A program made the translations under genes and the position numbers. Positions 1 to 33,379 of a stretch of DNA of 64,000 nucleotides are shown here, piece after piece. Position 1 is the first letter of the stretch. Each line of letters opens with the position of its first letter. The DNA is from Mantamonas sphyraenae STR306 (taxonomy: Eukaryota > Protista > CRuMs): assembly GCA_026936335.1 (NCBI GenBank), contig JAPMXV010000032.1, positions 1 through 64,000 on the forward strand. The letters are read 5' to 3'. A model generated the notes under the pieces. The model was not told the origin of the DNA and made no database searches. It was given only the letters and a program-made list of their open reading frames with translations.

Positions 1-145
1 ACCCTAACCCTAACCCTAACCCTAACCCTAACCCTAACCCTAACCCTAACCCTAACCCTAACCCTAACCCTAACCCTAACCCTAACCCTAACCCTAACCC
101 TAACCCTAACCCTAACCCTAACCCTAACCCTAACCCTAACCTTAA
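1..145. repeat. Telomeric repeat array (CCCTAA)n, i.e. TTAGGG on the other strand; chromosome end
   Basis: About 23 perfect CCCTAA units from base 1, ending in one variant unit CCTTAA at 140-145. Confidence 0.99.
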
Positions 146-15270: not shown

Positions 15271-15822
15271 ATGTACGCGGCGGCCATCTACGTATGGTAC
15301 GTCAACATGATCATCGACATTATCCTCAACATGGAGGTTTCCCCAAATCGCAACACGAATTGGATCCTCCTCGCCGCCCAGCTCGCCCTCCTCATCGTCT
15401 CCATCTTCATCCGCTTCTTCCTCTTCACCCGCACCTTTATGTTCCAAAACGGCCTCCTCACCCTCCTTTTCCGCGAGTTTCGCGTCGTCATCCTCGTGTC
15501 TCCAATTTATTTTCTTCTCACCTTTGCTGTCCGCCTCTGGCAAGCTGTACGTCGCCACTCTGCACACCGGCCGTTTTTTTGGCGCGTCAACCTGAAAAAT
15601 CCGCTCACACCTCGCCTTCCACAGCTCAATGTTCACTACGGCATGCCTCTCGTGAACACATGGTCTGCCCCAGGGTTTTTTGAACTACTCATTCTCCAGC
15701 GCCTCTTTGCAATCGCCTACTACTGGGTCAATCTCGTCGCCACGCGCAAGCTCGGCGATCAAAAGTACTACCGAGCCGAGTTGTTCCCTGTCAGTGAGCT
15801 CGGCAAGTTTACGGGCAGGTGA
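15271..15822 (+). CDS. TMEM138: Ciliary transmembrane protein TMEM138; join(15271..15546,15625..15822)
   Basis: TFMFQNGLL.LLF.EF and LQRL.AI.YY....A..KLGD.KYY motifs; 78-bp stopless intron GTACGT...CCACAG. Confidence 0.9.
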   Translation: MYAAAIYVWYVNMIIDIILNMEVSPNRNTNWILLAAQLALLIVSIFIRFFLFTRTFMFQNGLLTLLFREFRVVILVSPIYFLLTFAVRLWQAVRRHSAHRPFFWRVNLKNPLTPRLPQLNVHYGMPLVNTWSAPGFFELLILQRLFAIAYYWVNLVATRKLGDQKYYRAELFPVSELGKFTGR

Positions 15823-15852: not shown

Positions 15853-18800
15853 TCATTCCCCTTCTTCCAATAGCTCCTCAAGCGCCTCCTCACGCCCATC
15901 GTACTCCGTCTTGAACAGATCCAGCAGCGGCCCAAACAACTCCCCCACTGCTCCATCCCACATGGTCGCCGACAGCACTCCGTCGTTACACGCATACGTC
16001 AGCTGTGTTACCGTGCCATACTCCAAATCCTCCAGGAACAACTCTTCGTCGTCGTCCAGGAATTTGGCCGCAAACCTGTTGGCCGCTTCGTGCCTCTCCT
16101 CCTCCTCCATCCTCTCAAATCCTGCCCTCCACTCCTCACTTTCCTTCAAGAAAGGCAGGTAGCTCTCAGGATACGCTGCGTTCCCGGCCAGCTCTTGCTC
16201 CACGTACGTCAAAAACACTCGCCGCAGCGACTCGTCCTCCAGCACACCTGTGATCGACGTAAACCGCGCCACCCCCCTCACCTCATCCTCCTCCTCCGCC
16301 ATCTCTTCTCCATCTTCCCACTCCTCCCCGCCACCGTCTTCTCGTCCTGTCGTCTCCTCGCCCAACTTCCCGCTCCGCTCGCTTCGTGTCGACGACGCCT
16401 CATGCAGCTTCTCGATCGCCTTGGCACGTGACTCGCGCATCGACTCTTCCACTTCCTGCCGCTGTTGCTTGCGCACTTCTGCATCCATCGACAATCCGTT
16501 CAGCCCGATGCCTACGCTCTTGCGATTGTTCGTCACGTTGTCTAGGATCTCCTTGCGTCGCTTGCGTTCCTCCTCCTTGGCCTTCATCTCTGCGTACTGC
16601 TTCACAAGCTGCTCTTCCATCTCCTGAACTGCCGCCGCCTTGCGCGCAAGCTGCACAAACTCGTACGAAATGTACACCGCAAACAGAATGCACACCAAGC
16701 TGTTCAGGATCACAAGGAACACAGACACCACAATGATCGCACCGGGCTCCATCTCCTTCGAGAAGAACATCATGCCCGTTAACAGCGTCACTGCCGTCGT
16801 CAGCAGCGAAATGCCCTCCAGGTTCGTCGCCAGTGCCTTTTCAAACGGCCGCGCGTACAGATGCATGATCAACGCCCCCATGACAAGCCACAGGCCCAAG
16901 TACAGCTGCGTCAGTGGCTCGTTGCGGAAAATCACAACAAGGGCCACCACACAAAGCTTGCGTGTCATGATCACCACCTCCCAGAAGTATCGCTTGCCCG
17001 CGTATCCATCAAACACAAACTGCAGCCGCGCCATCACCGTCGGATGGTTCAGCTTGCCTCGCACTCGAATCAGCACCACCAGCGCAACCACAAGCAGCCC
17101 CACGCAAAACACAAGCGCAATCGGGATACCGTACGTGTCCCGAAACAGCTGGTACTCCTTCGATTTGCAGTCCACACGCATGTCCTCCACCAGATACGAC
17201 GATCCGTCCTCGAACGATTGGCAGCTGAACAGCTGGAACACTGCCTTGGACACAATCGGATGGATCAGAAACAAAATCACCACAACCGTCACCGAGTACA
17301 ACGTCACCAGCTTGTGCCGCCATGCCTCCTTGAACGACAGGCCCGACAGGTCCAAAAGATCTTTGTCCTCCTCATGCTCCACGCCAAACTCGGCCCCAAG
17401 ACGCCTCGCCAATCGCTTCGCACGACGCTGCACCTGTGCTTCCGTCATCACAGACTCGTCCTCCAGCGTTGGCTTGCCAATGTCGACTCCCATGCGCGGC
17501 ATCACCTCTGTGATCACCACGTACGCGACCAGGTACCCAAACACAGGCAACACCAGCACAAGCCATGGCAATACCATGTACGCGCTCACCTGGTCGTAGT
17601 ACGACAGGCGCATGGTGCAGTCCATCGGCTGAATGTTCAACGAAAACAGCGAAAGTGACGTCGCCTCGTAGAACCGCACCAGGTCGTCCGACCAGTCCAG
17701 ACGGAACTGTCCAATGAACGCCGTCACCTGCAAGTAGTTCAGCATGATCTTCATGATAATCGACACGGCGCTACGCTTGCCCGTCGCCGTGCGCACCAGG
17801 CCACCCAGTCCGAACAGCAGCACAAGGAAGAACAGCACCACAAGCAGCCAGTTCACCTCGGCCTCCGGACATTCCAGGCAGCTGCTTCCAAACTTGCCGT
17901 ACGTGTCTGCACAAACCGTACACAGCGGCCCTGTGTACCCGGCCGCGCATGTCGAGTTCACTCCACCCTTGCACGCCGCCGGGTTGGGACACGGGTACGA
18001 ATTGGGCGATCCAGGCACAAAGCGGAAGTTGCCTGGCAGCGGCTGCACCTCTTGGCCCTGCACGCAGCTTGTGCCCGCAGGACACTTTGCACATCCGCCA
18101 GACGTCGTGTTGCGATAGAACGTAGAGATGCACGAGCACTGCGATCGCAATACTGCGCCCACCAATCCACCGGTGTCTTCGTTCAAAGGGCAGCGGCTGC
18201 ACGCGTCGTTGCCCACCTCGTCCTTGTACTTGCCAGCCTCGCACGCAACACAGGGCAGCTGCTCGCCGTTGAACCCTTTGGCACACACGCAAAACCGTCC
18301 CGTGCCGTCTCGCTCCGTGTTGGCAGTCCGCTCCGCACACTGCACAATTTCAAACGTGCCGTTGATCCCAGACGTGCTCACGGCCACTCGTGTCGCCGTG
18401 AACGTGTACGTGTAGCGTTCGCCGTACACGCCCGTAAACGTCAGCTCGTCAAACGTCACTACGCCCGACTTGGACACGGCCACCTCGCCGCCAGCAGAAA
18501 ACACATTCGGCTGCACCACAAACGAAAACACTTCACCCGTCTTGTTGGCAAAGTTGCTTGCACTGTCGTACAGGTACAGCTGCGGCGGCTGTGCAATCAC
18601 ACCTGTGTTGTTGTTGCGCGCCTCGATGCCTCGGTGCAGGCGAGCCTCCACGACGGGTCCCGCCAGCACCTGAATCTGCAACTCCACCTGCCCTACGTCC
18701 TTCAGCGTCACAGAGAACACATGGTTTCCCGTCATCGCCGTCACGTACAGTGCATTCAGCACTGCCCGCCCGTTTGTCATGCTCGCCTGCCCCCCAGACA

Positions 18801-21800
18801 CAAAGGCCGTGTCCAGCGGTGACGACGACCCCGTCGCCCGCACCGGCCGCACAACCACAGGATCGCTGCGTGTCTGGTTCACACGGTTCAACGCCACATC
18901 TTGCATCCCCAGCTCCAGCGTGGGCACATGTGTGCCAGCGCTCACGTCTCCGCCAAACGGCACGCTCACAAACGCAGATGCCCCGGCGTGCGTCAACACC
19001 AGCGACCTAGGCACACCCGCAGACACCGTCACCTCCATCCTCCCTTCGAGTACACTCGAGCCGACAAAGCCCACAGCCAACACGTGCACACCCACCTGCG
19101 GCCGATTCAGCGCCAATCCGCCAAACCGCACACGTCCCTGCTGCATCAGCTTGCTCTGCTGACCAGACAGCTCCGCTATGGCCACCACCTGCCCGTTGCT
19201 GTTGACCCCGCCCGTCGACGAAGCCACTGCCACTGTCACTGTGCGGTCCGGCGCAGTCGTCACCTCGTTGCCACCCGAGTCCAACAGCACACCCAACACC
19301 TCTGGCAGGTACGACTGGTCACTCGTGAGCACAGACGCCTTGGTTTTGTCCACTGAAGACGTAAACAGAAACTCTGCACGCACACGTGCAGGTTGGCCAA
19401 CAAAGAAACGGACCGACTCTTGCATGGGCTCCAACCCGTTCGCCGCAAACTGCAGCGTGTACACGCCCACGAGTCCAGCTCGGAGCGCGAGGCTGTCAAA
19501 CACAGCCGTCGTGCCGTTCACAAGCGCCACGCGCGTCATGCCGCCCACCAGTTCCGACCCTGCGCTAACCAGCGTCGCATTCACAAGCACGCCCGCCACG
19601 CTCGGCCCATCCGTCACCACGTTCCCTCCTGCATCGGCGCTCACCACAGTGTACCTGCGCAGAGGCACAACTTCCGCATTCACAGCGTAGCCGTTGCTGC
19701 TGGTTCGCTCGGCCACCGCACGCACAAGGCTAAACGCCAAACCCGTCTTCACGTACACTCGCACGCGCTGCGGTATCAGACCCACACTGCTCAGTACCAG
19801 CTCGTACCCTTCACTCAGCACAGCCGGACGAAACAACGTCAGCCCGCCAAACGACACCACTCCGTTCATCATGCTCTGTGTCGTCGACCCGTTCAACGAC
19901 GCAAACGCACTGCTTGCGCTCGCCAGCCGTACGCTCACGTTGCGCACGCCGCTCAACGTCGTCGTGTTGCCTCCGGCATCCGTTGCGCGCACCGTCAACA
20001 CTGGTACAGCCGTGTCCACTGCCACCGCTGACGATGCAAGCTCGCTCGCCCCAGGCACAGACAGAGACACCGCCACACCTTGCGTCACGACAACCACCAG
20101 GCTACTCGACGCCAACCCTGTCGAGCTGATCACAAGCACGTGTTGTCCTTGAACAGGTGCCTCCAGAGTCACATTAAATTCACCTGCGCCCTGAGCCAAG
20201 GTGTGTGTCTGCGATCCGCTGGCAACCTTCACGCTGCTACTCTCCACACGCAACGTACGCGTCCCGGCAGTGTCCAGCGCACCTACTTCGTTGCCCCCTG
20301 CGTCCACAACCACCACGCGCATCGCAGACACGTCGACCACACTGCTCGATGCAATCGTCACGTTCGGCTGTCCCTGCACCGTAGCCACAATCCCCGTGGC
20401 AGCACCCGCTGTCACCTGCACCTGCACCGTTGCCCCTGCCAACGACCCGCTCGACACCGACAGTGCGTATGTGCCCACGCGCCCACCTTCCACTTGCACT
20501 CCGATGGCCGTCGCCTGCCCGCCATTCATGCTGTACGAAAGCGAGCCGCCACCCTGGCGGCTCACCACAAGGCCCGCAGGACCTGCCACAGCCACCGTTC
20601 CCACGCCTGTGCTCGTCACGCTTCCTCCTGCGTCCTCCACAACCACACGCACAGGCGCCAACACGCTTGCCGCGCTGCTGGCCACTTGTTGCACGCCGCC
20701 TTCCACCACGCGCAGTTGGTGATTCGGTCCAACCACAACTTGGAACGACGTTTGTCCGCTGCCGAGACCTGCGCTACTCACCTCCAGCACATACACACCC
20801 GCCGCGGGGCGGACCAACACCCCACACGCAAACACCAAGCTGCCGTTGCGCATGATCTGAGCGTTTGCAGCCCCCAAACCGGTAGTCGTCGCGCTCGCGT
20901 TCAAAATCCGACCTTCCACACTGCGCACCGCTGTGTCGTCGTCCACGGGACCGTTTCCACCTGCGTCCAGCAAACCCAGCAGGATGCCCGGGAGCTCGGT
21001 GTTTACCACCGCACCCAGCCCAATGTTGCTGCTGTTGCGTGCATACAGCGCACGTGCCTCACCCACCACAATTTCTACGCTCGTTCGCGTGCTCACGAGC
21101 CCGTTCGACTCAAACACCACCGCATACGCTCCGACCTTGGGCCGCTGCATCTGCACAGAGTAAACAGACGCAGACTGCTGTGTCAACCGAGACGCAAGCC
21201 CGCTCGGCACAACTCCAGATCGGCTGTCGTTCACACTCGCGGACACAAGCTGCTCGCCGCTCACGCCGCTCTGCGTGCCCCCGGCATCCAGCACACGCAC
21301 CACCACGGCGCTTACGTTCACAATCTCCGACGACCGGTACACTCCAGCTGAGCTCGGCGACACGGACAACTGTTGCGCAGCGCCCACGCTCACCACAATG
21401 CTCCCACTCACGTTTTGCAGCCCACCGCTTTGGAACCACACCTGATAGGTTCCGTTCTGCGGCCTGGCCAGACGCAAATTGCTGAACTGCACCTCGCCCG
21501 CCACACTGCTCAGCCCCAACGTGCCCACCAGAGGCGCGTCGCTGGCCACCACCACGCTGCGGTTCACAACGTCAGTGTCCCCGACAAAGTTGCCGCCACT
21601 GTCCAGTACACGCACAGTGTACGTCGGCAGTGCCACGTCTACAGCCGAGGAGACTGCCACTGACCCCGATGGCGACACAATAACCAGCCGCTTGCCCGCG
21701 CCTCGCACTACCTCCACACTCACGTTGGTCGCCAACAGGCCCGCGCTGCTGACCTCTAGTGTGTACTGGCCGGCCAGTGGACGCACGAGCGACACGTTCC

Positions 21801-24800
21801 CGAAACTTGCTGTGCTCGCATTCAACAAACTTGCAGACAGTGTGCCCGACAGAGCCATGTTGCTTGGCCCACCCACCTGTCGCACACTCACAGTGCGCGT
21901 ATCGGCAAGCTCCACAGGCACCACGTTGTCCGCTGCATCCCTCACATGCACAACCAACACGCCTACTGCACTGTTTTCGTCCGACGCAATGCCGCTCACA
22001 GAGCTGTTTGCACTCAGTCGGTACCCCAAGCCCAGCTGCACTGCAAGCACGACGCTCGCATTCTGAAGGCCCACACCACCAATCTCCAGCGTGTAGTTGG
22101 CCACAGCCGGCCGCACCAACGTGATCGCTCCAAAGCTGCCCGTGCCGCCGCTGCTGCTGGACACGACCGATCCATGAAGTACAAGGCTTCCACTTGCACT
22201 CAGTTGCACATCCACCACCGTGCCGCTTGCCACGTTACCCGATACGTCCAAAACTTCGTACGACAACGTCGGCACGTTCACGGTCGACGCTGTGCGCACA
22301 ACCAACGCACCGTCGCCTACTCGCCGAACACGTACCGCAGCTCCTGCGCGCACCACCAACGCGGCACTGCCATTCAACAGACCTTCGCTGGTAAACTCAA
22401 GGCTGTACACCCCCGTGCGCGGCAGCACCAATTGCACAGAGTCAAAAAGTGCCACCGCCGTGCTTCCGTTCAGCACGACCGACAGGCCGCCCTGCAGCTG
22501 CAGGCTCGTGTCGTTGCTTCCACCCACGCTCACCGTTCGATTCACCACGCGGTGTGCGTCCACCGTTTGCCCATTTGCGTCCACAACGCGCACTTCCACC
22601 TGCCCTATGTTGGCCACAGAGGCACTGGTCACCGTGGTCGAAACCACGCTGCTTGTAAGTCCGTACGGAATGCCTGTCGTGCTGTTTACCGTCACCTCCA
22701 CGCCCAAAGCAATGCCCACAGCGGAAATGCGCAGCGTGTACTCGCCCTGCGGCAGCCGAAGAACCGCAAGGTTGTTGAATGTCGCAGTGCCAGCCACCAT
22801 GCTCGTGCTGCTCCCATTGCTACGCAGGCTGCTGCTCTGCGTCGTCAATGCTGCCGTGGTCGTGCGCGTTTCGTTGTCAGCCGTGCCCACGACGTTCCCG
22901 CCCACATCCAAGCTTGTCACTTGAACCTCGCCCAGTGCAAAAGCGACTGCACTTTCCGCGTTCAAAACACCGCTTGCGGGCTTGTCCACACGCAGAGATG
23001 CACCTGCGCCTGGAACAACCACGACCGTCAATGTGACCGCTTGCAGCCCTGGCAAAAGCATCTGCAGCACGTATGTGCCCACACGAGGCGATCCGAGCGA
23101 GAACGAGGCAAACACAGCACGTCCGCTCGACAGAGGCTCTGCTTTCACTGTTTTCAACGCTGAAACCGGCCCGCTTTGCTGTGTCACGCCCACGGCGAGC
23201 GTAGAGCTGTCTGCGCTGCCCAGATACTGGCCAAGCAGATCTGCAGTGCGCACGTCCACATTGTCCACCGTGGTCGAGCTGCTGCACGCCAACGTCACAT
23301 TGGATGTGCTCGCCAGTACAAGCTGTGTCGCTGTGCCGACACGCACCTCTACGGATACGCTCGTATTGAATGCGATTCCCGCACCTGCCCCAACAGAAAA
23401 GACATATCGCCCCACCTTCGCCAGACTGAGCGACAGATCATTCACCTGTGCCACGCCGTCTTTCAGCGCCACCGTGGTACTTCCTGACAGCGCGACGCTG
23501 CTGTTCAAGCTGCGTACACTCAGCATCGTGTTTGCAGCTGGCCCCAGCGCCGTGGCCACCCCGGCAGAGTCCACCGTGCGTACCGACAAAGACCCCAACG
23601 CCATTGTGGTTGCACTCTGCACCGATGCGCTCAGCGCGTTTGTCACTTCCAGCGAGTACGCAACGCCCTCTGTGACCGTCAGAGCAACGCTCGTCCCGAG
23701 AATTCCGCTGCTGTTGAACTTCAGCACATAGTCCCCTTTGCGCGGCGACAGGCTATACACCTCGTTGAACGTCAGCAACGGCCCTGTGGCGTTGGCCCAA
23801 ACTCGGCCGTGGAGCGATAGCGACTGCGAGTTGCCCCCTACGACCTCCACCGAAACGTTCACTCCCGGTGCACTCAGCACGTTGCCCGACACGTCCAGTA
23901 CGCGCAACGAAACCGCAGGTATGCTGCTGTTCAGGGTGCTTTGCATGCTCACGCTTGCACTGCTGGTTCGGTCCAGTCGGTACGCCACGCCGACGCTCAC
24001 GCGCAGACTCAGCCACGTTGCGTTTGTCGACGGTATGGTGTCAAACTGAATGCGGTAGGTGTCTGCAACCGGGAACAGCAGCGCGAGGTCCGAAAAGTTG
24101 GCTCGCCCGCCTTGGGCTGTGCGCAGAAGTGTCCCGGCAACAGCCCCGCTCGCAAGCTGAACTTGCCCTCCACCCAGTCCGTCGCGGAACAAACGCACTT
24201 GGAAAGACTGCGTCTGTGTATCGTTACTCAAGAGAACTTCCGCTTTGTGGTTCAGCGTCTCTGCCACCACACTGGGCAGCGGAAACGTGGCCGTGGCGCC
24301 CAGGCCATCCACAGCCCCGTATGTGCCCACTGCACGCACCTGCGTCGGCTCGTCTGTGGCAATCCCATGCACCTCGACTTCGTACATCCATGCCCCGTCA
24401 GACACACTGCTGCCCACCGCACCCATCAGCGCCTCGCTGTTGTTGAATCGGATACGGAACTGCTGAGCGCGCACCTCACTAGCAAGGAAGTCCAGGCAGA
24501 TGGACGCGTCGTTCTGGTCCGAGGGCACAAAGAAGCACGGCTTCTGCGCACCCAGACTCACACCTTCCACCTTGGTCACACGTGTCACCAGCTGCGTCCA
24601 CTGCAACGTCGACTCGTCCCAGTAGTCCACGAAATAGAACGGCGGTTGGTTTCGACACGGTTGATACCATGTCGTCACAAACTCGTTGACAAACGCAGGT
24701 TTCGCCAGGTTCACCTGCACGGCGGTCAGTGCCGTTGCACTCGACGCCAGAGCGTCAAACTTGCGTCCACATCGGAACCCGCCGGTTGCGTCCGTCTTGA

Positions 24801-27800
24801 GGCAACATCGATCCCCGTCAATCAGAGATCCCAGACTCGTGCTCGTGTTTGAAATCCCGTCCTGTTGACCTGCCGCCGTCCCGTTCAGCGTCGCATTCAG
24901 CGCAAGGTTGGGGAAGTACACGGCTCCGAGGCTCGTGCGCTCCTGCACGCCCACTTCTAGCTCTCCTGTTTCGCGGCACAGGGGCGAAAATGGTTCGACC
25001 ACGGTGTAAAGCGTATTGCTGCTCACACGCGCGTATTGTTGGCCATTGTTTCCCACGCCCACCGTGTACTTGCCCGCGTCCATCGGCGGCGCTTCGCACA
25101 CCACCTCATTCGCCGATACAAACGTCACCGTCGGGCTCTTGTTATTTCCAAACGCACAGCCCAGTGTGGCAGTGTTCAGGAAGTTGCTCCCTGTCACCGT
25201 CACCTTTTCCTTGCCAAACGTGCGCCCGGAGCTGGGCGAAAACGCGCTTGCGGTCTCTGGTGGATATGTGCTGTACAGGATCTCCGTGACGCTGTAAGAC
25301 CCGTCATTGTTCGTCACATTCACTGTGTAGCCCGAACCCAGAGGCAATGCGGGTGCGGAGCAGTACAGCTGCGTGCCGCTCAGCACTGTGACGCCCGTAC
25401 ATGCAAGCCCGTTCACAATCACCTTCATCTCTGGAATCTGCACAAAGCCTGTGCCCGTCAGAGTCACCAGCGCACCGCCTGTTGTGCGTCCCTTGTCTGG
25501 CGAGATGCTCGTCAGGTTCGCGTTGGCCAGTGGTTGGGCAGTGAAGGGGCTTCCTGGCAGCTGACTTGCGCCGTGCAACACCGTCACATTGTGGTTTGTC
25601 AGCGCGCCAAACACGTACGTGAAAAGATACTCGCCTGCGCTCACTGTGCCAGCGTTGGTCACGTTCACCGATGGGCCCCCGACGCGGTTCACCAATACGG
25701 TAAACGTGTCGGTGGACAACGAGCGCACGTTTGAAAACACATCTCGCGCGCTCACCACCACTCGCGCATCTGTGCCCAGTGGCTGCTGCGACACGCCCTG
25801 GCCAGACACCGTGCTGTGGACCACCGACAACGCCGCAGGCCGGATCGTTACCACGCGCACCTCTCCCACCAGAGCCGAGCCGCTCGATACGCCAACGCGG
25901 TAGTCTCCACTCAGGGTCACGTTCACTGCGCCTTGGTATGTGCCCACACCTGCACCTCCGTATGTGAGCACTGTCGTTTGGACGGCGCTCGCCTGCGCCG
26001 TGTGCTCCAGACGTACGGACAAACCAACACCCGGGTCGCTCGTCTGGTTGTTTCCATATTGGTCTCGAGACATCACAGTCACCTGCAGCAACGACCCTGC
26101 GTCTACAGACGCGGAAAGGCTCGCAAAGATGCTCGACGAACGCGCAACCGCACCCGGAAACACATCCACCGTTCCTGCGTCCATCCCAACGTTGCCCAAC
26201 GTCGCATTGTTCACTGAAGCACTCACACGATACCTGCCTGATGTCGTTGCGTGCACAGCCACAGTGTACACAGCCAACTCGCTGTCACTCGGTGTCGTCG
26301 TGGCCATGCCAACAAATACAGGAGTGCCAGCGCCATCCGCCGCCAGTTTTCCGACCACGCTCTGCGAAACGCCCGCCTGCGCGCGAGTCACATTGTTTCC
26401 GAATGCGTCACGCAACTGCACCACAAACGTGTTGGCCACATCCGCCACGTTGTTGCTCGTGTTGCGCAGCACACTCTGGAACGCGTTCACCACGCCTGGC
26501 GAGATCGTCAATGTGCGCGGCGTTGTCGGTGCCGTTGCTCCGTTGACGCTAACCGTCAGCAAGTATGTGCCACTCAGGGTTGCGTTGTATGTGCAAGCAT
26601 GGATCCCTTGGTTGCTGTTGGCCACTGTGCACGCGGCAACCACTGTGCTGCCAATCCCGTGTCCGCCAGTACCCACTGCCTGGGCTGACACCGCGTCCAT
26701 GCCTACGTCGCGTGCGTTTCCATACGCGTCAAACAGTTGCACTTGGAACACCTCGGCCGAGCCCGCAACTCCGTTTTCAAGCGCCCCTCCAGTCAACACC
26801 GATTTCGATACGAGCGTCGGTCCAGAGCGCACATTGAACTGCCGAGGCGTGGCGTCGGGCACCAAGTCCACCCCAAAGCGTACTTGCAGCGTCTGCAGAC
26901 CTCGCTCCGTGGCGTTGTACTCCACCACATACAGGCCCTGTGACGATTGCACCACCGTGTGCGTTGTGCTCGCCTTGCCGAATGTCACCACAAGCGTCTC
27001 TTCGTTGCTCGTGCGGTTGTTGTCGAATTTGTCTCGAGCCTGTACGTAGACCGTACTCGCAATACCTGCAGTTGTTTCCGCCGTGCCTGGGCCAAACACA
27101 AGCGACCGGCTCACGTTTGTCGCTTCGGGTCTCACCACGGGCGCAAACGGACTGCCCGCCACATGCTGTGGACTGGTGCCAACTTGCTGCGCAAGCACAG
27201 CAAGCGAATATGTACCGGCCACCGTGGCTGTGTGCATGGTCACCGCGTATTCGCCCGATGCAACAGAGAAAGTGTTCAGGACCCGTGTCACTTGGCCTCC
27301 ACCCAGCAGGTTCAGCGTCGCCGTGGCGGCAATCGACTCTGTGTTTTCGGTGCGATTGTTTCCAAACGCATCGCGTGCTCGGATCGAAAACGACCACGCC
27401 TGGCCGGCAAGCACTCCTGACACACCTGTGCCAAACGTGACAAACTGCGCTTGTACGGGCGCAGCCGGGCTGATTGTCAGCGTCATTGGGCTGCCTTTGA
27501 TGTCGACACCGTTGCTGCGCACATGCATGGTGTACCCGCCCGACAGCGTGGCGTTGAGCATCAGCACCGATTGGCCCAGCGAGCTCGCAGAAACCGTGCT
27601 ATTCACAACAAGCTGCACGCCGGCAGATGAGTGCACAGCCTGCGCCGTGAATACACTTGGCACGTCTGTGCGCGCGTTGCCAAACTCGTCCCTTGACTGC
27701 ACCGTCAGTGTCGTCCCTGCGCCAGCCAGCACAGACAAAGTCCCACTAAGCGTGCACTCGTTCACTCGCTCCGCTGCAGGTAGCACGCTTGCCTGTTGAG

Positions 27801-30800
27801 GTCCTCCTTGGATTGCTGTGCCGCCCACGTTCACTGTGACTGTCACTGTGCCCCGCTTGGTCGCTCGAAATCGAATCAGCTTGACGCCTGCCGTTCCGTC
27901 CACCACCGCCAAATTTCCGCCCGTCACCTGGCTGCCATCTCCGTCCTGCACAGTCACTGTTGGCTGTCCCGGGTCGTACGTGCTACGATTGTTGCCATAC
28001 TGGTCGCGGTACTGCAGCGAGGCTTCGCGCAGCTCGCCTGCCGTCATGTTGACGACTCCATGCAGTGTGAATGCCCCCACAGACGCCGCTGCCGGGTTTA
28101 CGCGCACTGTCGATGGTGACGGGCTGATGTGCGGCCCGCCTGCTCCTACCCGCACGCTGTAGGCGTGTTCGGTAGCCACCGTGGACGTGTATGTGCCCGT
28201 AAACATCCCGTTCAAGCCCGCTGACTTTGTAGGCGTACCCAGGAAAGTCACTGCAAGATCGCTCGCCTGTGCTTGTGTCACCTCGTTGTTGAACGCATCT
28301 CGTAACGTCAAACTGTACGTTCCCGACACACCATTCGAGGCGACACCGTTGTTGACACTCAGCGTGCTCTTGCTTGCGTCAATGGAGGCAGAGCCCACAG
28401 TGACCGTCTTTGTCGACGTTGGCGCGGGCACACTCACGCCTCCTGTCTGTGTTTTCATCTGATATGACCCCGTTTTGGTCAGTGCAACCGTTGTGGCCGT
28501 GTACAAGCCTCCCGAAACGGCTTGGAATTGCACAGCCGGCGGCTCAGGCACGCCTACCGGGTGGAGTGTCCACACAAAGTTGAACTGCACTCCGTTGTCC
28601 GTCATCTGGTTGCCATAGATGTCACGTGCCGTCACGTTCACGGTCCACGTGTTGCCTGCGACCAGCGAGTCGGCCGCACTCACTTGTGTGTTGGAAGGTC
28701 CAAACGACGCCGGCTTCACCATCACCGTCGCGCTGTCCACGTCATCGCCATTCAGCCTCACCGTCACGTTGGACATGCCGGCCTTTGTGGTCGCCACGCG
28801 TACGTCGTACTGCCCATTGTTCAGGTCCGTGAGGGTCAGTCCTACCGCAGCTGCATCGTTGTAGTCCATGCCAAGCAGTCGCACCTTTGCCTGAAATCCG
28901 TTTTCGCCTCCCAGTACCTGCACGTTTCCGTACGCGTCTCTTGCCTGCAACCGAAGAAGCAACGTCTGCCCAGCCACCACTTCCAGGTTGCCCGCAACCA
29001 CAAGGTGGCTACGGGCCGCGCTCGTCACTCCTTGACTCACAACCACACTCAATGGGATCCCATTCACATCCTGTCCGTCAAGTTTGATGTACAGCTGGTA
29101 GGTCGCTGCACCCTGGGTCACGGTGTAGTTGTACTGCACCGTATCTGCGCTCACTGCCTCAAACTGCAACTGTGCACTGCCGATGTTGCCCGTAAGCGCC
29201 AGTCCCGTACTCGATGCCAACGGGTTGTTGAATCTGTCTCGTGTGTGCAGCGGAAAGGTGATCGGGACGCCTACTTGCGACGTCCCCGTATTCCCCACGA
29301 CAAAGTTGCTTGCAGAGGCCACACCTGCATCGACTCTCAGCGCACCCAGAGTCCCAATGTCACCGCCGTTGTAGCGCACAGCCGCGCTGTACTGCCCTGC
29401 GCGTGTGATGTTCAATCGCAGGCGCACCTTGGTGTCCACGACATCGCGCACAGTGAAATCCACGTTCTGGTCGTTGATGTTGATGGTCACAGTCGTCAGG
29501 TCACGCTGCGCCGCACTCGGTGAAATCAGATTCTCGTAGGTGTCCTTCAGTTGCACCTGCACCTCGGCCAGAGAGCCGGCGGTGATGGGGAAATTGTTGG
29601 ACGTCACTGTGCTGCGTGCGGCTATCGGACTGCCGGGCACAAACGTGACCCCCGCGGTGTATGGTGATCCCGAAACGTGCACGCCGCCGATGGTCGCGTT
29701 GAAGCGAACTACTTGGGCCACGTGGTAGGTTGTGCTGGATGTTTCCTGTCCAATAGGGGCCACGCACGGCCCAGACGTAATGATCTGGTTTCCCGCAGGG
29801 AAAGAGATCAGTGCCGAAGGAGAGCACGCGCCGCTCGGCTCTGCGTTACCAAATTGGTCGCGCTTGACCACTGTGACACTCATTTGGCTGCCCACCGTCA
29901 ACGTGGTCGCCGTGGTGACCGATACAATGCTGTGAGAGGCGCTCAGCGGGCCGCTCTGCACCGTAGTTGTTCGCAAGCTGCCGCTCGTGGTCGAACCCAA
30001 TCGAGCATGCACCGTGTACGCACCCCTTTGCGTCACAGACACACCAGAGGCGGTGAACACGTTGGTGGCATGCGCGAGCGGAATCACAATGTCCGCGTTT
30101 CCTGTGCGCTTCATCACCGCAGCGACGCCCACGCTGGCGTTGTTGGTCAGCTGGTTGCCAAAGGCGTCAAACAAGGTAAACTGGATGGTTTGCGAGGTGC
30201 TCGCGACAGGTGTGGCTGCACACAGAGTTCCGCTGCTGCACTGCGTGCTTGCCGCGTTGGGTTCGCCTGCATTGATGGCCACCTGTGTTGTCGCCACGTC
30301 CACACCGTCAATGTACAGTTTGATGTCGAATGTGCCCGCTCCGTTGACCTGCGTTGGAGCCTGCAACGTGAACTCATTGGTATTCGTCGATTGCACCTCC
30401 AGCGTGGCTACGCCTCCGGCTTGCCCAAAGTCCACGGTGATGTTGTGCTTGCACGCCACGTTGATGGCCGCGGTGTTTCCATCGCGCAGAACTGCAACGG
30501 CGGTGGGCTTGGTGGTCCCCGCCGCGCCCGCAGTCACCGTGCCAAAGCCGGATTTGACTGAAACAACCTCCGAGACCTCCCACGACTTGCCGTTCGCCAT
30601 CTGCCAGGTCATACCTCCGTCCATGGACGCACACAACCTAAAAGTCACGGCTGTGTTGGGTGTGGGCGTGTTCAGCACCACATTTCCGCCGAGGGCGGTG
30701 ATGCTGGCCACCTGTACTGTGTCGTTCGACGTCTTGGCTCCGTTGCAATCGGCTGCAGTCGTAAAGTGAAGCATTTTGAGGGAAGCCCGCACGGTGGTGG

Positions 30801-33303
30801 TCCCACACGTGCCCGTGCACCACGTAAACGAGTTGACGGTGCTTGCGACGCAGGCACGCGCGGTCATGTCCAGCGTGGACGGATGCGTCTTGGGCATCAG
30901 CGTGCGGTAGTGAACGGGCCGTTGGTCGATTCCATTCTGCGAGCCGGCCGGGGGCTGCCCAACATCATTATTGGCGTCGATGTTGGTGAGAGACACCACC
31001 TGCATCGGCACCGCGTTGGGGCCATAGATTGTCACCGCCATCCCATCGGGACCGAACCGAATTGGGAGAGTGGAGCACGGAGCGCACCCGGGCGGGGATG
31101 CTGTACTGCTACGCAGAAAATCAAGGGCAAAGCGAGCATCGACAGCTGCTTGCCCCCACTCTGTGAAGCCAAGCATCCTCTGCATGTCCGCATCGAGTGC
31201 GCGATCCAGCCATATCACCTGGGAAATAAATCCCGTGAAGTATCGTTCACGAATGCCAAAATTGGCATCTACAGGGTGTGGTCCACCAATGGTGCTGTGA
31301 AAGTCGGGTGAGGTGAACGGATGCACGTGTGTCAGAGCAATGGGTTAAAACGGCACGGCGCGGGGGAGGACATGACCAGAAGGCACATACAAGTGATCTG
31401 TGGTGGCGGGTTGGTTGGTACAATCGGCTGTGGGCGAGTGTTTGCCTTCGACAACCTGCTCATCGAGGTGTAGACGATGTTGGCCTCCAGGTCCCCCATA
31501 GGAGAAAGACAGCTGCTGCCAGGTGCGCTCGTTTGCACTCAAAGGAGCGTACCAACATTCGTCAGCCAACGTAGAGTGACGAAGGTACACTTTAACGCGA
31601 TGAATACGCGAAGCCGCCTCTGCCTGGTAGTACGCAGCCACGCCAAAGCCTCCCTTGGAGAAGGAGAAGAGGTAGCCACTCTGGAACTTTACATCGACCG
31701 CGGGCGCACCCGTTGCTTCGGAAACGATGTCGGCGCGGAACTCCATGGCCAATGTGAATGGGCTGGCCTCGTCGATGGGTCGGCCCGTGTTCGACAGTTG
31801 CATCGTATCCGTCCTGAACCACAGTGCATAGGCTGGCGAAAGCTGTGTGGTCGAAAACAAATTGGTGTTGGTCTCGGTGGCCGTGTCTGAGAAACAACGA
31901 AATTGGTTGGGGGTGGGGTGTGTGAGTGGTTGGCATGCCAGCGGCTATGGTTCTGGTTCACAAACTTACACATGGGTGCCTGCAATGCTAAAACTGGATT
32001 GGTCTCCCTAGGTGTCTGCGGTTGCGTAAATTGCAACGCCAGCGGTGTTGGGCGCGGGCTCGGAATAGCGACGTCTGCGACCCGACCCTGGTCAGCCCAC
32101 GTGTATTCGATGGTGCCGAAAACTTGCAGGTACGGCACGAGCATGTACTGGTCCAGAGTGCGAAAGATGTCCAGAGGCAATTGTTGTGCAGCCACATACT
32201 GCTCTAGTTGCATGTAGTTGATGCCTGTGCCAATCCAGATGCCGACCTCGCTCAGAAACCCATAAAAGAGCTCCTTATCTTCGTAGTGCAGCGCGCCAAT
32301 GTTCATGGCGTTGATAGTGCCACCCGATCCACATGAAGAAGGAGGTGTTGTCAAGGTGTCCAATGTTTCGGGAAAGGTGCCAGGAAGGTCAACTACGGTC
32401 ACCACGTTCTTCACCACCAAATAGAACTTGCGTGCCTCAACACGAGACACAATGACCGGTGTCCATTCTCCAATGGTGATGGTGGCACTTGCAGTTTCGT
32501 GCTGTGTGGTGGTGGGCAGAATGTGTCAAGAGCGCAAATCAACATACATCCACGCCACGTCTCGCAGCAGACGCAGTCCTATTCCCCCACAATCCATCCA
32601 CGGGTGAGCACAAAATGTGTGCGTCCAACTTACATCTGCAGCGGGGCTATTCGAAGGATTCTGTACAGTCTTGGTGATCGCTGCAGAAACACCGAGCACC
32701 ACCTGGTTGTTCTTGACACCGATGCGCACGCCGCGCACATAGCGGCCACAGCCCCCATCGTTGGAGTTGAAAGCAAGCTCTCTGCAGAACACGCCTTGCA
32801 TTGTGGAGCCCACGTTGGCTTGCACCTGAACGCCCCAAACGGTGTCAGCGGTGTGATCACGCGGTGTGACAAAGTGCTTCCACACAAAATCCCGCGAACG
32901 AGTTCATTCGCCGTGCTGCCGGTCAGGAAACCTACATAAATCCACACAGCGATGGTGAAGCGGTCATCCAACAGCAGTGGGCCTGTGGTGAGGTGATGGG
33001 CAGATTGAGCGTGAGCAGCGGAAGAATCGGAAAACGCCTGAAAAACGTGCGTCCTCGGGCTCTTCGGCTTGCCTCGCCGCGCATCATCAACCTACTCTTC
33101 CAGCGATTGTTCACATAGGACGTGGTAGTTGTTGGGTATGTCAGCTCCGCACTGACTTTGGGACTCCTTGTAACAGGGTCTTGGCCGAACACCTCGATGA
33201 ATTCTGTGAAGCCGGCCTTCATGGAATACTGAAGTGCAAAAGATCCCACGACTGCCAAAGCCAACAGTAGCACAAGTTCTCTTGCGCCGACAATACGTGC
33301 CAT
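15853..33303 (-). CDS. Giant (~5638 aa) cell-surface receptor: signal peptide, 2 LamG, filamin/Ig-like repeats, 2 IPT/TIG, Cys-rich repeats, ~9 TM, coiled coil, C-terminal RGS domain; introns 32983-33095, 32826-32935, 32502-32633, 31887-31969, 31295-31390
   Basis: 5157-aa ORF plus five upstream exons joined in phase by canonical introns (16917 nt). N-terminal hydrophobic signal; LamG motifs FTIAVWIY...IGA...FYG.LSEV.IW; repeated RD.[FY]GN Ig units; ISP.KG.T.GG..VTLTGTGF; CxxC repeats; LNYLQV and Y....YFWEVV..RK TM motifs; RGS-like tail. Confidence 0.9.
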
Positions 33304-33379
33304 GGTTGCCTATCCAAGGTTCCGGGATCTCGTTGCTCCCGGCCCCGCACCTGCCAAGACAACCAAGCAAACGTCACAC

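Follow-up and report, generated by a model that had tools for sequence, protein, structure and literature searches.

A giant receptor gene of Mantamonas sphyraenae joins a Pkd2/Flc-like nine-helix membrane domain to an RGS-fold tail without the canonical GAP residues

The closest described systems are the 7TM-RGS proteins of Naegleria fowleri, an expanded family of 28 genes whose members 7TM-RGS2/3/4 combine an adhesion-type lectin/Cys-rich ectodomain with a multi-pass membrane domain and a C-terminal RGS; ectodomains of the family carry GPS, EGF and lectin modules, and the RGS domains are proven GAPs (PMC9283941). Arabidopsis RGS1 and the 7TM-RGS of Trichomonas are likewise membrane proteins with a cytosolic RGS, but they lack a giant ectodomain and are canonical GAPs with self-activating G-alpha targets. 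Another type of membrane domain is found in fungal Pkd2/Flc proteins (PF06011) and in the protist DUF7630/Ephrin_rec_like family, which have nine helices, an extracellular Ig-like part and a coiled-coil tail. Fission yeast Pkd2, with its nine helices, lets Ca2+ pass upon stretch (10.1101/2022.08.11.503631; PMC9727806). Very long modular stalks in front of a multi-pass domain, likely contact or force sensors, are known from adhesion GPCRs and polycystin-1, families from which RGS is absent. Finally, it is established that some RGS domains serve as scaffolds and have no GAP activity (PMC3971589).

In the 64,000-nucleotide stretch of DNA analysed here (the window), from the gliding flagellate M. 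sphyraenae, we confirm a giant receptor gene with an RGS-fold tail. The minus strand of the contig carries a continuous reading frame of 5,163 codons (31344..15853), and the summed exons 1-6 (16,917 nt) encode 5,638 aa plus the stop without internal stops, which agrees with the single polypeptide of about that size and the five introns first read from the sequence. All five GT..AG introns are absent from one spliced contig of 17,428 nt (run X3), showing that the gene is transcribed. This contig starts at 33324 and was followed down to 28200, and its length is compatible with a colinear exon 6 that extends into the convergent neighbour gene. Below 28200, no in-frame strong-donor candidate for an intron hidden in exon 6 was found. 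Wrongly joined exons are ruled out for the 5' end by this one contig across exons 1-6, and an artefact or chance ORF by the spliced contig, the paralogs and a second species. Past the stop codon the sequence is antisense of the adjacent gene, and no second, broken RGS was found 3' of it. The features of the gene are collected in Table 1.

Table 1. Positions of exons and protein features of the giant receptor gene within the window.
Feature	Position	Strand	Content and basis
Exon 1	33096..33303	-	ATG, signal peptide (~aa 1-23), first part of putative LamG 1; spliced contig and translation
Exon 2 (47 nt)	32936..32982	-	LamG-like strand; spliced contig and translation
Exon 3	32634..32825	-	Spliced contig and translation
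Exon 4	31970..32501	-	Remainder of putative LamG 1 (motifs only), Pro/Thr linker; spliced contig, no family match
Exon 5	31391..31886	-	LamG/ConA-like domain 2, finishing in exon 6; Atlas Laminin_G_3 clusters, 0.96
Exon 6, giant terminal (15,442 nt)	15853..31294	-	Translation; no strong-donor intron candidate below 28200
Ig array I, 15 filamin/GEX2-type repeats, ~105 aa each	25528..30264	-	Pfam and self-HMM
Two IPT/TIG domains	25000..25515	-	Pfam TIG, two stretches, E 1.8e-10
F5/8 type C (galactose-binding)-like domain, Cys-containing, weak	24357..24990	-	PF00754 E 0.004, under cut-off
Array II, Ig-like repeats (17 or more, ~108 aa)	18650..24228	-	Self-HMM; CarbopepD_reg_2 under cut-off
Juxtamembrane Cys-rich region, no GPS	17875..18340	-	Ephrin_rec_like and DUF7630; domain searches
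Nine-helix membrane domain, PF06011 (Pkd2/Flc TRP_C)-like, non-GPCR fold	16657..17865	-	AlphaFold2 model, pLDDT 86.8; homologues
Coiled-coil-like cytosolic segment and acidic linker	16291..16656	-	Sequence
Single RGS-fold domain without Asn88/Asn128/Asp163/Arg167 equivalents	15871..16290	-	Pfam, AlphaFold2, alignments
Acidic alpha5-alpha6 loop of the RGS-fold tail	~16021-16056	-	Alignments

The ectodomain of ~4,950 aa sets the receptor apart from the Naegleria proteins. It follows a putative signal peptide, read from the sequence. The sequence-only reading had listed two LamG domains, the second of which holds (Atlas score 0.96), whereas the first is suggested by motifs, exon-by-exon family searches having returned no match. 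Its long filamin-like Ig array was recovered with 15 repeats by self-HMM (Pfam Filamin E 3e-63, Ig_GEX2_N E 8e-33), and the two IPT/TIG domains, the second Ig-like array and a Cys-rich region before the membrane were recovered as well. Its Cys-containing beta-rich domain weakly resembles the F5/8 type C fold. The stalk comprises ~34 Ig-like domains and, by a rough estimate, would measure ~150 nm when extended. Neither a GPS pattern nor a Pfam match to a GAIN/GPS autoproteolysis motif was found in the receptor.

The membrane domain appears to be of the fungal Pkd2/Flc (PF06011-like) type and is not GPCR-like; a TRP_C-like rather than GPCR character had been proposed from its motifs, together with a count of about nine helices. 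Its model has nine helices rather than seven, and PF06011 is matched by 20 of 26 aligned homologues (best 2.5e-12), the receptor's own copy scoring under the Pfam cut-off (E 0.084). It also matches an Atlas TRP cluster (0.93) and uncharacterised eukaryotic Atlas clusters (TM-score 0.7-0.84). Structure searches returned neither a PDB relative nor a GPCR, the best hit being to unrelated bundles (Z 7.9). A GPCR or adhesion-GPCR identity is ruled out by the nine helices, the lack of a GPCR structural match and the lack of a GPS. Naegleria 7TM-RGS proteins, in contrast, have seven helices and often a GPS (PMC9283941), and adhesion GPCRs and polycystin-1 differ from the Mantamonas receptor, which has no GAIN/GPS or GPCR fold match. 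Unlike fungal Pkd2/Flc, it has no detected ML-like lipid-binding domain, but a giant stalk and an RGS-like tail. Since the number of helices after the signal peptide is odd, the tail is predicted to be cytosolic, in line with the earlier proposal. Cysteines of the membrane domain occur only in the loops preceding helices 1, 3 and 5, placing these disulfide loops outside in the predicted topology, and basic loops precede helices 2 and 6.

Modelling indicates that the tail has a true RGS fold, as had been suspected. In isolation it scores 24.5 bits against RGS (PF00615; cut-off 23.9), and in the genome scan 24.0 bits. Its AlphaFold model (pLDDT 91) shows the two-lobed helical RGS fold, and the best 50 Foldseek and top 12 VIA matches are RGS/RH-containing, with one unannotated. 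The best is EhRGS-RhoGEF (Z 12.2; rmsd 4-6 A across matches). The highest-ranking structural matches (Z 9-12) also include Axin, GRK2/5, SNX13/25 and the RhoGEF rgRGS, soluble or endosomal proteins whose RGS folds lack the canonical contacts. As a single query against PDB sequences the tail found no match; the family profile was required. The nine-helix domain occurs at ~90 loci in the genome, 16 of which end in RGS-like domains, the giant receptor being one of them and not unique in this respect. Counterparts of the RGS-tailed paralogs were found in M. plastica only, and there the RGS-like domains are kept at 30-70% identity; therefore, the fold is under constraint.

The critical RGS-G-alpha contacts are Asn88, Asn128 and Asp163 (PMC8252600). 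Based on sequence alignments at ~20% identity, the equivalents of Glu87/Asn88, which contact switch I, are Ser/Tyr in the tail, that of Asn128, the residue that (like Ser in its place) orients the catalytic Gln, is Glu or Asp beside a one-residue insertion, and those of Asp163/Arg167, in a region of less certain register, are missing in both alignments. The Ser previously assigned to the Asn128 position sits in the alpha3-alpha4 'EEN' segment instead. Across the family the loss is nearly complete: Asn88 is present in 2/33 family domains (31/39 canonical RGS), Asn128 in 2/33 (27/39), Asp163 in 3/33 (16/39) and Arg167 in none (15/39), and the Phe149 core position is kept in 23/33. In a quick tree a single branch (SH-aLRT 96) sets the family apart. 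Canonical RGS proteins with intact contact residues are encoded elsewhere in the genome. Thus, the proposal of a G-protein 'off-switch' is not supported, and the interpretation of the sequence-only reading as a whole is partly supported. Because the switching residues are lost, a docking module is likelier than an off-switch. We judge the chances slightly better than even that the protein is a cell-surface contact or adhesion receptor of a lineage-expanded Pkd2/Flc-like family with a non-catalytic docking tail. Its putative lectin-like head may bind glycans on prey or on the substrate, and the membrane domain, a putative mechanosensor, would be acted on by load that the stalk transmits. The tail would serve like the RH domains of Axin, GRK and SNX, its conserved acidic loop recruiting a basic partner without speeding up GTP hydrolysis. 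Candidate partners are active G-alpha, in which the Lys180 position is Lys/Arg in all three proteins of the genome, or a cytoskeletal adaptor.

This loop replaces the Asn128 loop by a conserved D-x-D-x-[DE] patch, present at the same aligned position in 23/33 family domains. Asp at loop positions 1 and 3, the two near-invariant family columns, occurs in 27/33, but in none of the 39 canonical RGS, counts that are not independent since the aligned rows are related. We know of no non-GAP RGS-homology domain (Axin, GRK, SNX, rgRGS) with a D-x-D-x-D loop. The Asn loop may have turned into a Ca2+-binding loop, the tail acting as Ca2+ sensor or feedback on a stretch-gated, Ca2+-permeable domain like that of fission yeast Pkd2. 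In line with this, 11/33 family domains, and 0/39 canonical ones, deviate from the PROSITE EF-hand loop pattern by at most one mismatch, with three full matches, which include paralogs C7 and C25 and of which one is in M. plastica. Moreover, Dx[DN]xDG loops arose convergently in many folds (PMC3123361). We nevertheless consider the Ca2+ loop rather unlikely: at positions 1, 3, 5 and 6, where the EF-hand signature has three Asp and Gly, this copy has Asp, Asp, Glu and Leu, and no family member has Gly at position 6. The position-12 acid derives from the RGS helix cap, the 11-residue spacing is found in about half of the members, and the domain is highly acidic (pI 4.1); against shuffled sequence, the match in this copy has a p of 0.06. 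Improbable, too, is the wider reading in which an RGS GAP became a Ca2+ module on a stretch-gated Pkd2/Flc-type domain with a 150-nm lectin-tipped lever, a one-chain tethered mechanosensor encoded by 16 genes. If true, the catalytic-Asn loop would have become D-x-D-x-D in a lineage that branches close to the base of Amorphea, and the mechanosensor would have built-in Ca2+ feedback.

A receptor-GAP that silences G-alpha on surface contact, in the manner of AtRGS1 or Naegleria 7TM-RGS and maybe by a non-canonical acidic mechanism, is an unlikely reading. It would fit the RGS fold with its predicted cytosolic location, as well as the three G-alpha genes found in the genome, whose catalytic Arg, Gln and RGS-sensitivity Gly are intact, and it has a precedent in the GAP-active lectin/EGF proteins of Naegleria. 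Some GAPs tolerate a change of Asn128, and p115-type rgRGS domains use an acidic motif that lies outside the RGS box; both points weigh against the docking interpretation. The Asn128 equivalent is kept in one paralog domain, the second RGS of C12, but is Gly in its M. plastica counterpart. The absence of all four contact residues from the giant receptor and the 7tm_2-type receptor matches in the genome likewise argue against this reading.

Most of the ~90 loci lack an RGS-like tail, and eight paralogs have two RGS-like domains where the giant receptor has one. In the quick tree the giant receptor has a long terminal branch (1.41), and a one-to-one counterpart of this copy did not turn up in M. 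plastica. These features would fit a tail that, in this paralog, is decaying from an ancestral RGS module, on a protein that is a plain adhesin or glycocalyx rod. We give this reading little credence, since the confident model has an intact hydrophobic core and family loop, and the gene has an open frame and is transcribed.

Although the nine-helix domain occurs widely in protists, none of its relatives has a solved structure, and a function is known in fungi only; in other organisms it bears other tails (TIR_2, START, EF-hand). Word-index searches within a limited length window found no full-length relative, only membrane-domain relatives without RGS, and an RGS-like tail on this domain was not seen outside Mantamonas. 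Searches of mostly non-subscription literature found no account of RGS proteins in Mantamonas or of such a combination of domains. The claim that no such receptor was known must be narrowed, the Naegleria proteins having comparable GPS/EGF/lectin ectodomains, though on a different membrane domain. RGS-fold domains on a Pkd2/Flc-like nine-helix instead of a 7TM domain are an architecture for which we found no published description. CRuMs, to which Mantamonas belongs, branch close to the root of animals, fungi and amoebae. With ~90 copies, 16 of them joined to a recognisable signalling fold, the genome offers a handle on the nine-helix domain; the tails, being small and soluble, lend themselves to direct assays of GAP activity and of G-alpha and Ca2+ binding, with only three G-alphas to cover. 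The same RGS-like domain also occurs in two soluble proteins, one of which carries two PH domains.

The scanned genome comprises 25,061,354 bases in 78 contigs and the window has a GC content of ~59%; the published assembly of Mantamonas sphyraenae has 25.06 Mb, 78 contigs and 59.19% GC (PMC10492846). The source is taken to be this species, whose genus consists of gliding bacterivorous flagellates of the CRuMs group, and the nearest relatives found are Mantamonas plastica proteins. The gene contains an open frame of 5,163 codons (31344..15853, minus strand). A contig of 17,428 letters from sequencing run X3 was placed over positions 28200-33324 in six pieces, skipping five stretches whose ends (CT..AC) read GT..AG on the minus strand. 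These five canonical splice joints, together with a word share of 0.84 in X3 vs 1.00 in two other runs, indicate that X3, which carried the guessed label 'DNA?', is RNA. The six exons total 16,917 nt, corresponding to 5,638 aa plus a stop, and their phases are consistent. With one contig skipping all five introns and the exon frames open, both the gene and the splicing proposed in a previous sequence-only reading are confirmed. If colinear below 28200, the X3 contig would end near 15363; passage through the apparent intron of the convergent neighbour would shift this end to about 15285, close to that gene's ATG (15271). Its length thus fits, without proving, an exon 6 free of further introns.

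Domain searches, run one exon at a time, resolved the ectodomain into the features listed in the table. None of the tools tried in these exon-by-exon searches confirmed the first LamG domain, and a pattern search of the receptor found no GPS motif. At ~4.5 nm per unit, the ~34 Ig-like units would form a rod estimated at roughly 150 nm if extended.

Features of the receptor and of neighbouring genes in the window
Feature	Position	Strand	Basis or remark
Signal peptide	receptor N-terminus	(-)	read from sequence
Putative LamG domain 1	exons 1-4	(-)	motifs only
LamG domain 2	after LamG 1	(-)	Atlas score 0.96
Filamin/GEX2-type Ig repeats, n=15	after LamG 2	(-)	Pfam and self-HMM
TIG domains, n=2	after first Ig array	(-)	Pfam
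F5/8-type-C-like domain, weak	after TIG pair	(-)	Pfam, below cut-off
Further repeats, at least 17, ~108 aa each	after F5/8-type-C-like domain	(-)	self-HMM
Ephrin_rec_like and DUF7630	juxtamembrane, before helices	(-)	domain search
Receptor transcript contig, start	33324	(-)	head-to-head with hydrolase gene, 54 bases between
Alpha/beta hydrolase gene contig, start	33378	(+)
Small convergent membrane-protein gene	15271-15822	(+)	stop 31 bases from receptor stop
Apparent in-frame intron of this gene, 78 nt	15547-15624	(+)
Frame of 2,490 codons	55887-63359	(+)	no Pfam match

An AlphaFold model of the membrane domain built from 26 homologues (pLDDT 86.8) contains nine long membrane helices, with conserved cysteines in the loops preceding helices 1, 3 and 5, and basic loops preceding helices 2 and 6. 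Since the N-terminus is outside, nine helices put the RGS tail in the cytosol, a predicted topology that agrees with the sequence-only reading. The same reading had likened the domain to TRP_C-like ones rather than to classical GPCRs, which the analysis supports: PF06011 (the fungal Pkd2/Flc 'TRP' domain) was matched by 20 of the 26 homologues, the receptor copy alone reaching only E 0.084. Judged by structure searches the model is not a GPCR fold, as neither Foldseek (nothing under E 0.2) nor VIA (no Z >7.9) matched it to a solved structure. In the ESM Atlas, an equivalent fold occurs in uncharacterised eukaryotic clusters (TM-score 0.7-0.84), some of which also carry TIR_2, START, EF-hand or LRR domains. 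For Pkd2 of fission yeast, too, predictions give nine helices followed by a coiled coil in the tail. Pkd2 passes Ca2+ upon stretch (PMC9727806). The nine-helix domain of the receptor might conduct ions.

Sequence profile and predicted structure agree that the tail is an RGS fold, as had been proposed. The isolated tail scores 24.5 bits against PF00615 (cut-off 23.9), and a profile from 18 domains of the receptor's RGS-like family best matched EhRGS-RhoGEF (E 3.8e-6), followed by RGS18, 8, 10, 6 and 16. Foldseek with the AlphaFold model of the tail (pLDDT 91) returned RGS/RH-containing chains in all 50 rows shown, none under E 0.001. In a wide structure search the top 12 rows had Z 12.2 to 7.7 and the first clearly unrelated row 7.0; for a helical bundle a Z near 12 is by itself not decisive.

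What the tail lacks are the residues of a GAP. In RGS4, three residues make the critical contacts to G-alpha: Asn88, Asn128 and Asp163 (PMC8252600). The segment of the tail corresponding to 'EEN' reads E-S-Y, with Ser at the Glu87 site and Tyr at the Asn88 site, so that the Ser previously equated with Asn128 belongs to Glu87; the true Asn128 site is Glu or Asp, adjoining a one-residue insertion. Asp163 and Arg167 have no match. Across 33 family domains vs 39 canonical RGS domains, Asn88 is kept in 2 vs 31, Asn128 in 2 vs 27, Asp163 in 3 vs 16 and Arg167 in 0 vs 15, counts that are descriptive because the rows are related and not independent. The tail is thus probably not a GAP. The genome also encodes three G-alpha subunits, as the earlier proposal presupposed, and all three retain the catalytic Arg, the catalytic Gln and the RGS-sensitivity Gly. 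It further has canonical soluble RGS proteins with intact contacts and four 7tm_2 matches, so that ordinary off-switches are available to the cell. Among receptor-tail domains, just one, on contig C12 near 146,700, clearly retains an Asn128 equivalent, and its M. plastica counterpart has Gly there. Any residual GAP activity would most likely be found in this pair, which branches apart from the remaining family.

Where GAP residues were lost, the family conserves a loop of the form D-x-D-x-[DE], which connects helix 5 to helix 6. We favour, with moderate confidence, a contact receptor with a lectin-like head, a load-transmitting stalk and a non-GAP docking module as its tail; its anatomy is observed, while ligand, partner and gating are proposed. 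The head would bind glycans of surface or prey, contact or load would reach the nine-helix domain along the stalk, and a basic partner would dock on the RGS-fold tail, which would not speed up GTP hydrolysis. That the tail senses Ca2+ is a minority reading and rather unlikely. Asp1 and Asp3 of the loop occur in 27/33 family vs 0/39 canonical domains, and the PROSITE EF-hand loop pattern is matched fully by three members and within one mismatch by eleven; however, Gly at position 6 is absent from every member, positions 5 and 6 of the receptor copy are Glu and Leu, and acidity extends over the whole domain (pI 4.1). Loops of this kind do evolve by convergence in many folds, with acidic regions especially prone to acquire them (PMC3123361). 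An acidic docking patch is the likelier use of the loop. A true receptor-GAP, the off-switch originally proposed, appears slightly less probable still: the fold, the predicted cytosolic tail and the G-alpha genes bore part of that interpretation out, but the critical contacts are absent from the tail and nothing in the analysis favours a self-activating G-alpha. Least probable is a decaying remnant.

Most eukaryotic lineages contain fusions of RGS to membrane domains, and certain RGS domains serve as scaffolds that lack GAP activity (PMC3971589). In Naegleria fowleri there are 28 7TM-RGS proteins; GPS, EGF and lectin ectodomains are present in several of them, and the RGS domains of these proteins act as GAPs (PMC9283941). 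The adhesion-type RGS receptor is thus a kind already known. The receptor resembles these proteins in layout but stands outside their family in its nine helices, different fold and absent GAP residues. Our literature search found no paper that deals with RGS proteins of Mantamonas or with the fusion of an RGS domain and a PF06011-like one.

The membrane domain matched ~90 loci in the genome, a lower bound (~1% of 9,416 genes); 16 of them carry RGS-like ends, eight as tandem pairs and eight single, and many have filamin and LamG matches upstream. When 1.84 billion cluster representatives were searched with the family profile, all four strong matches (E 1e-48 to 6e-29) were from M. plastica, and ordinary RGS proteins followed from E 3e-9. 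Two are giants (6,023/6,831 and 5,219/5,365 aa) with an Ig stalk, nine helices and tandem RGS; the others are tail fragments. In Rigifila the membrane domain occurs with no RGS attached. On present sampling, the RGS-tailed family is confined to the genus Mantamonas. Identity between matching pairs of the two species is 30-70% over the RGS-like domains; over the membrane domain it is 60-81%. A quick tree places the 33 family domains on one side of a branch (SH-aLRT 96) and gives support of 98 or more to four pairings or groups of M. sphyraenae with M. plastica. These shared pairs indicate that the family predates the split of the species.

Two soluble proteins also carry the receptor-type RGS variant. 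One (C49 near 555,300) is of low complexity, its acidic RGS-like domain lying among four L-x-H-P-T-x-G-R repeats that have no Pfam match. These repeats resemble capping-protein-interaction motifs. The other (C46 near 194,000) combines two PH domains, an acidic RGS-like domain and a coiled coil. A paralog on C26 near 135,000, whose one open frame runs for 10,900 codons and ends in a degenerate RGS-like domain, forms a close subgroup with members on C2, C53, C54 and C61. On C70 near 152,000, a near-identical partial copy of that contig's tandem RGS-like receptor tail lies ~15 kb from it and has no membrane-domain match. An RGS domain also ends a long Furry/MOR2-like helical protein, as read from sequence (C70 near 27,300), and a canonical one stands behind an apparent GBA2-type glucosylceramidase domain, read by eye (C57 near 311,700). 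Finally, nine-helix loci on C31, C45, C58 and C63 are paired a few kb apart with equal or near-equal scores, which suggests recent local duplications.
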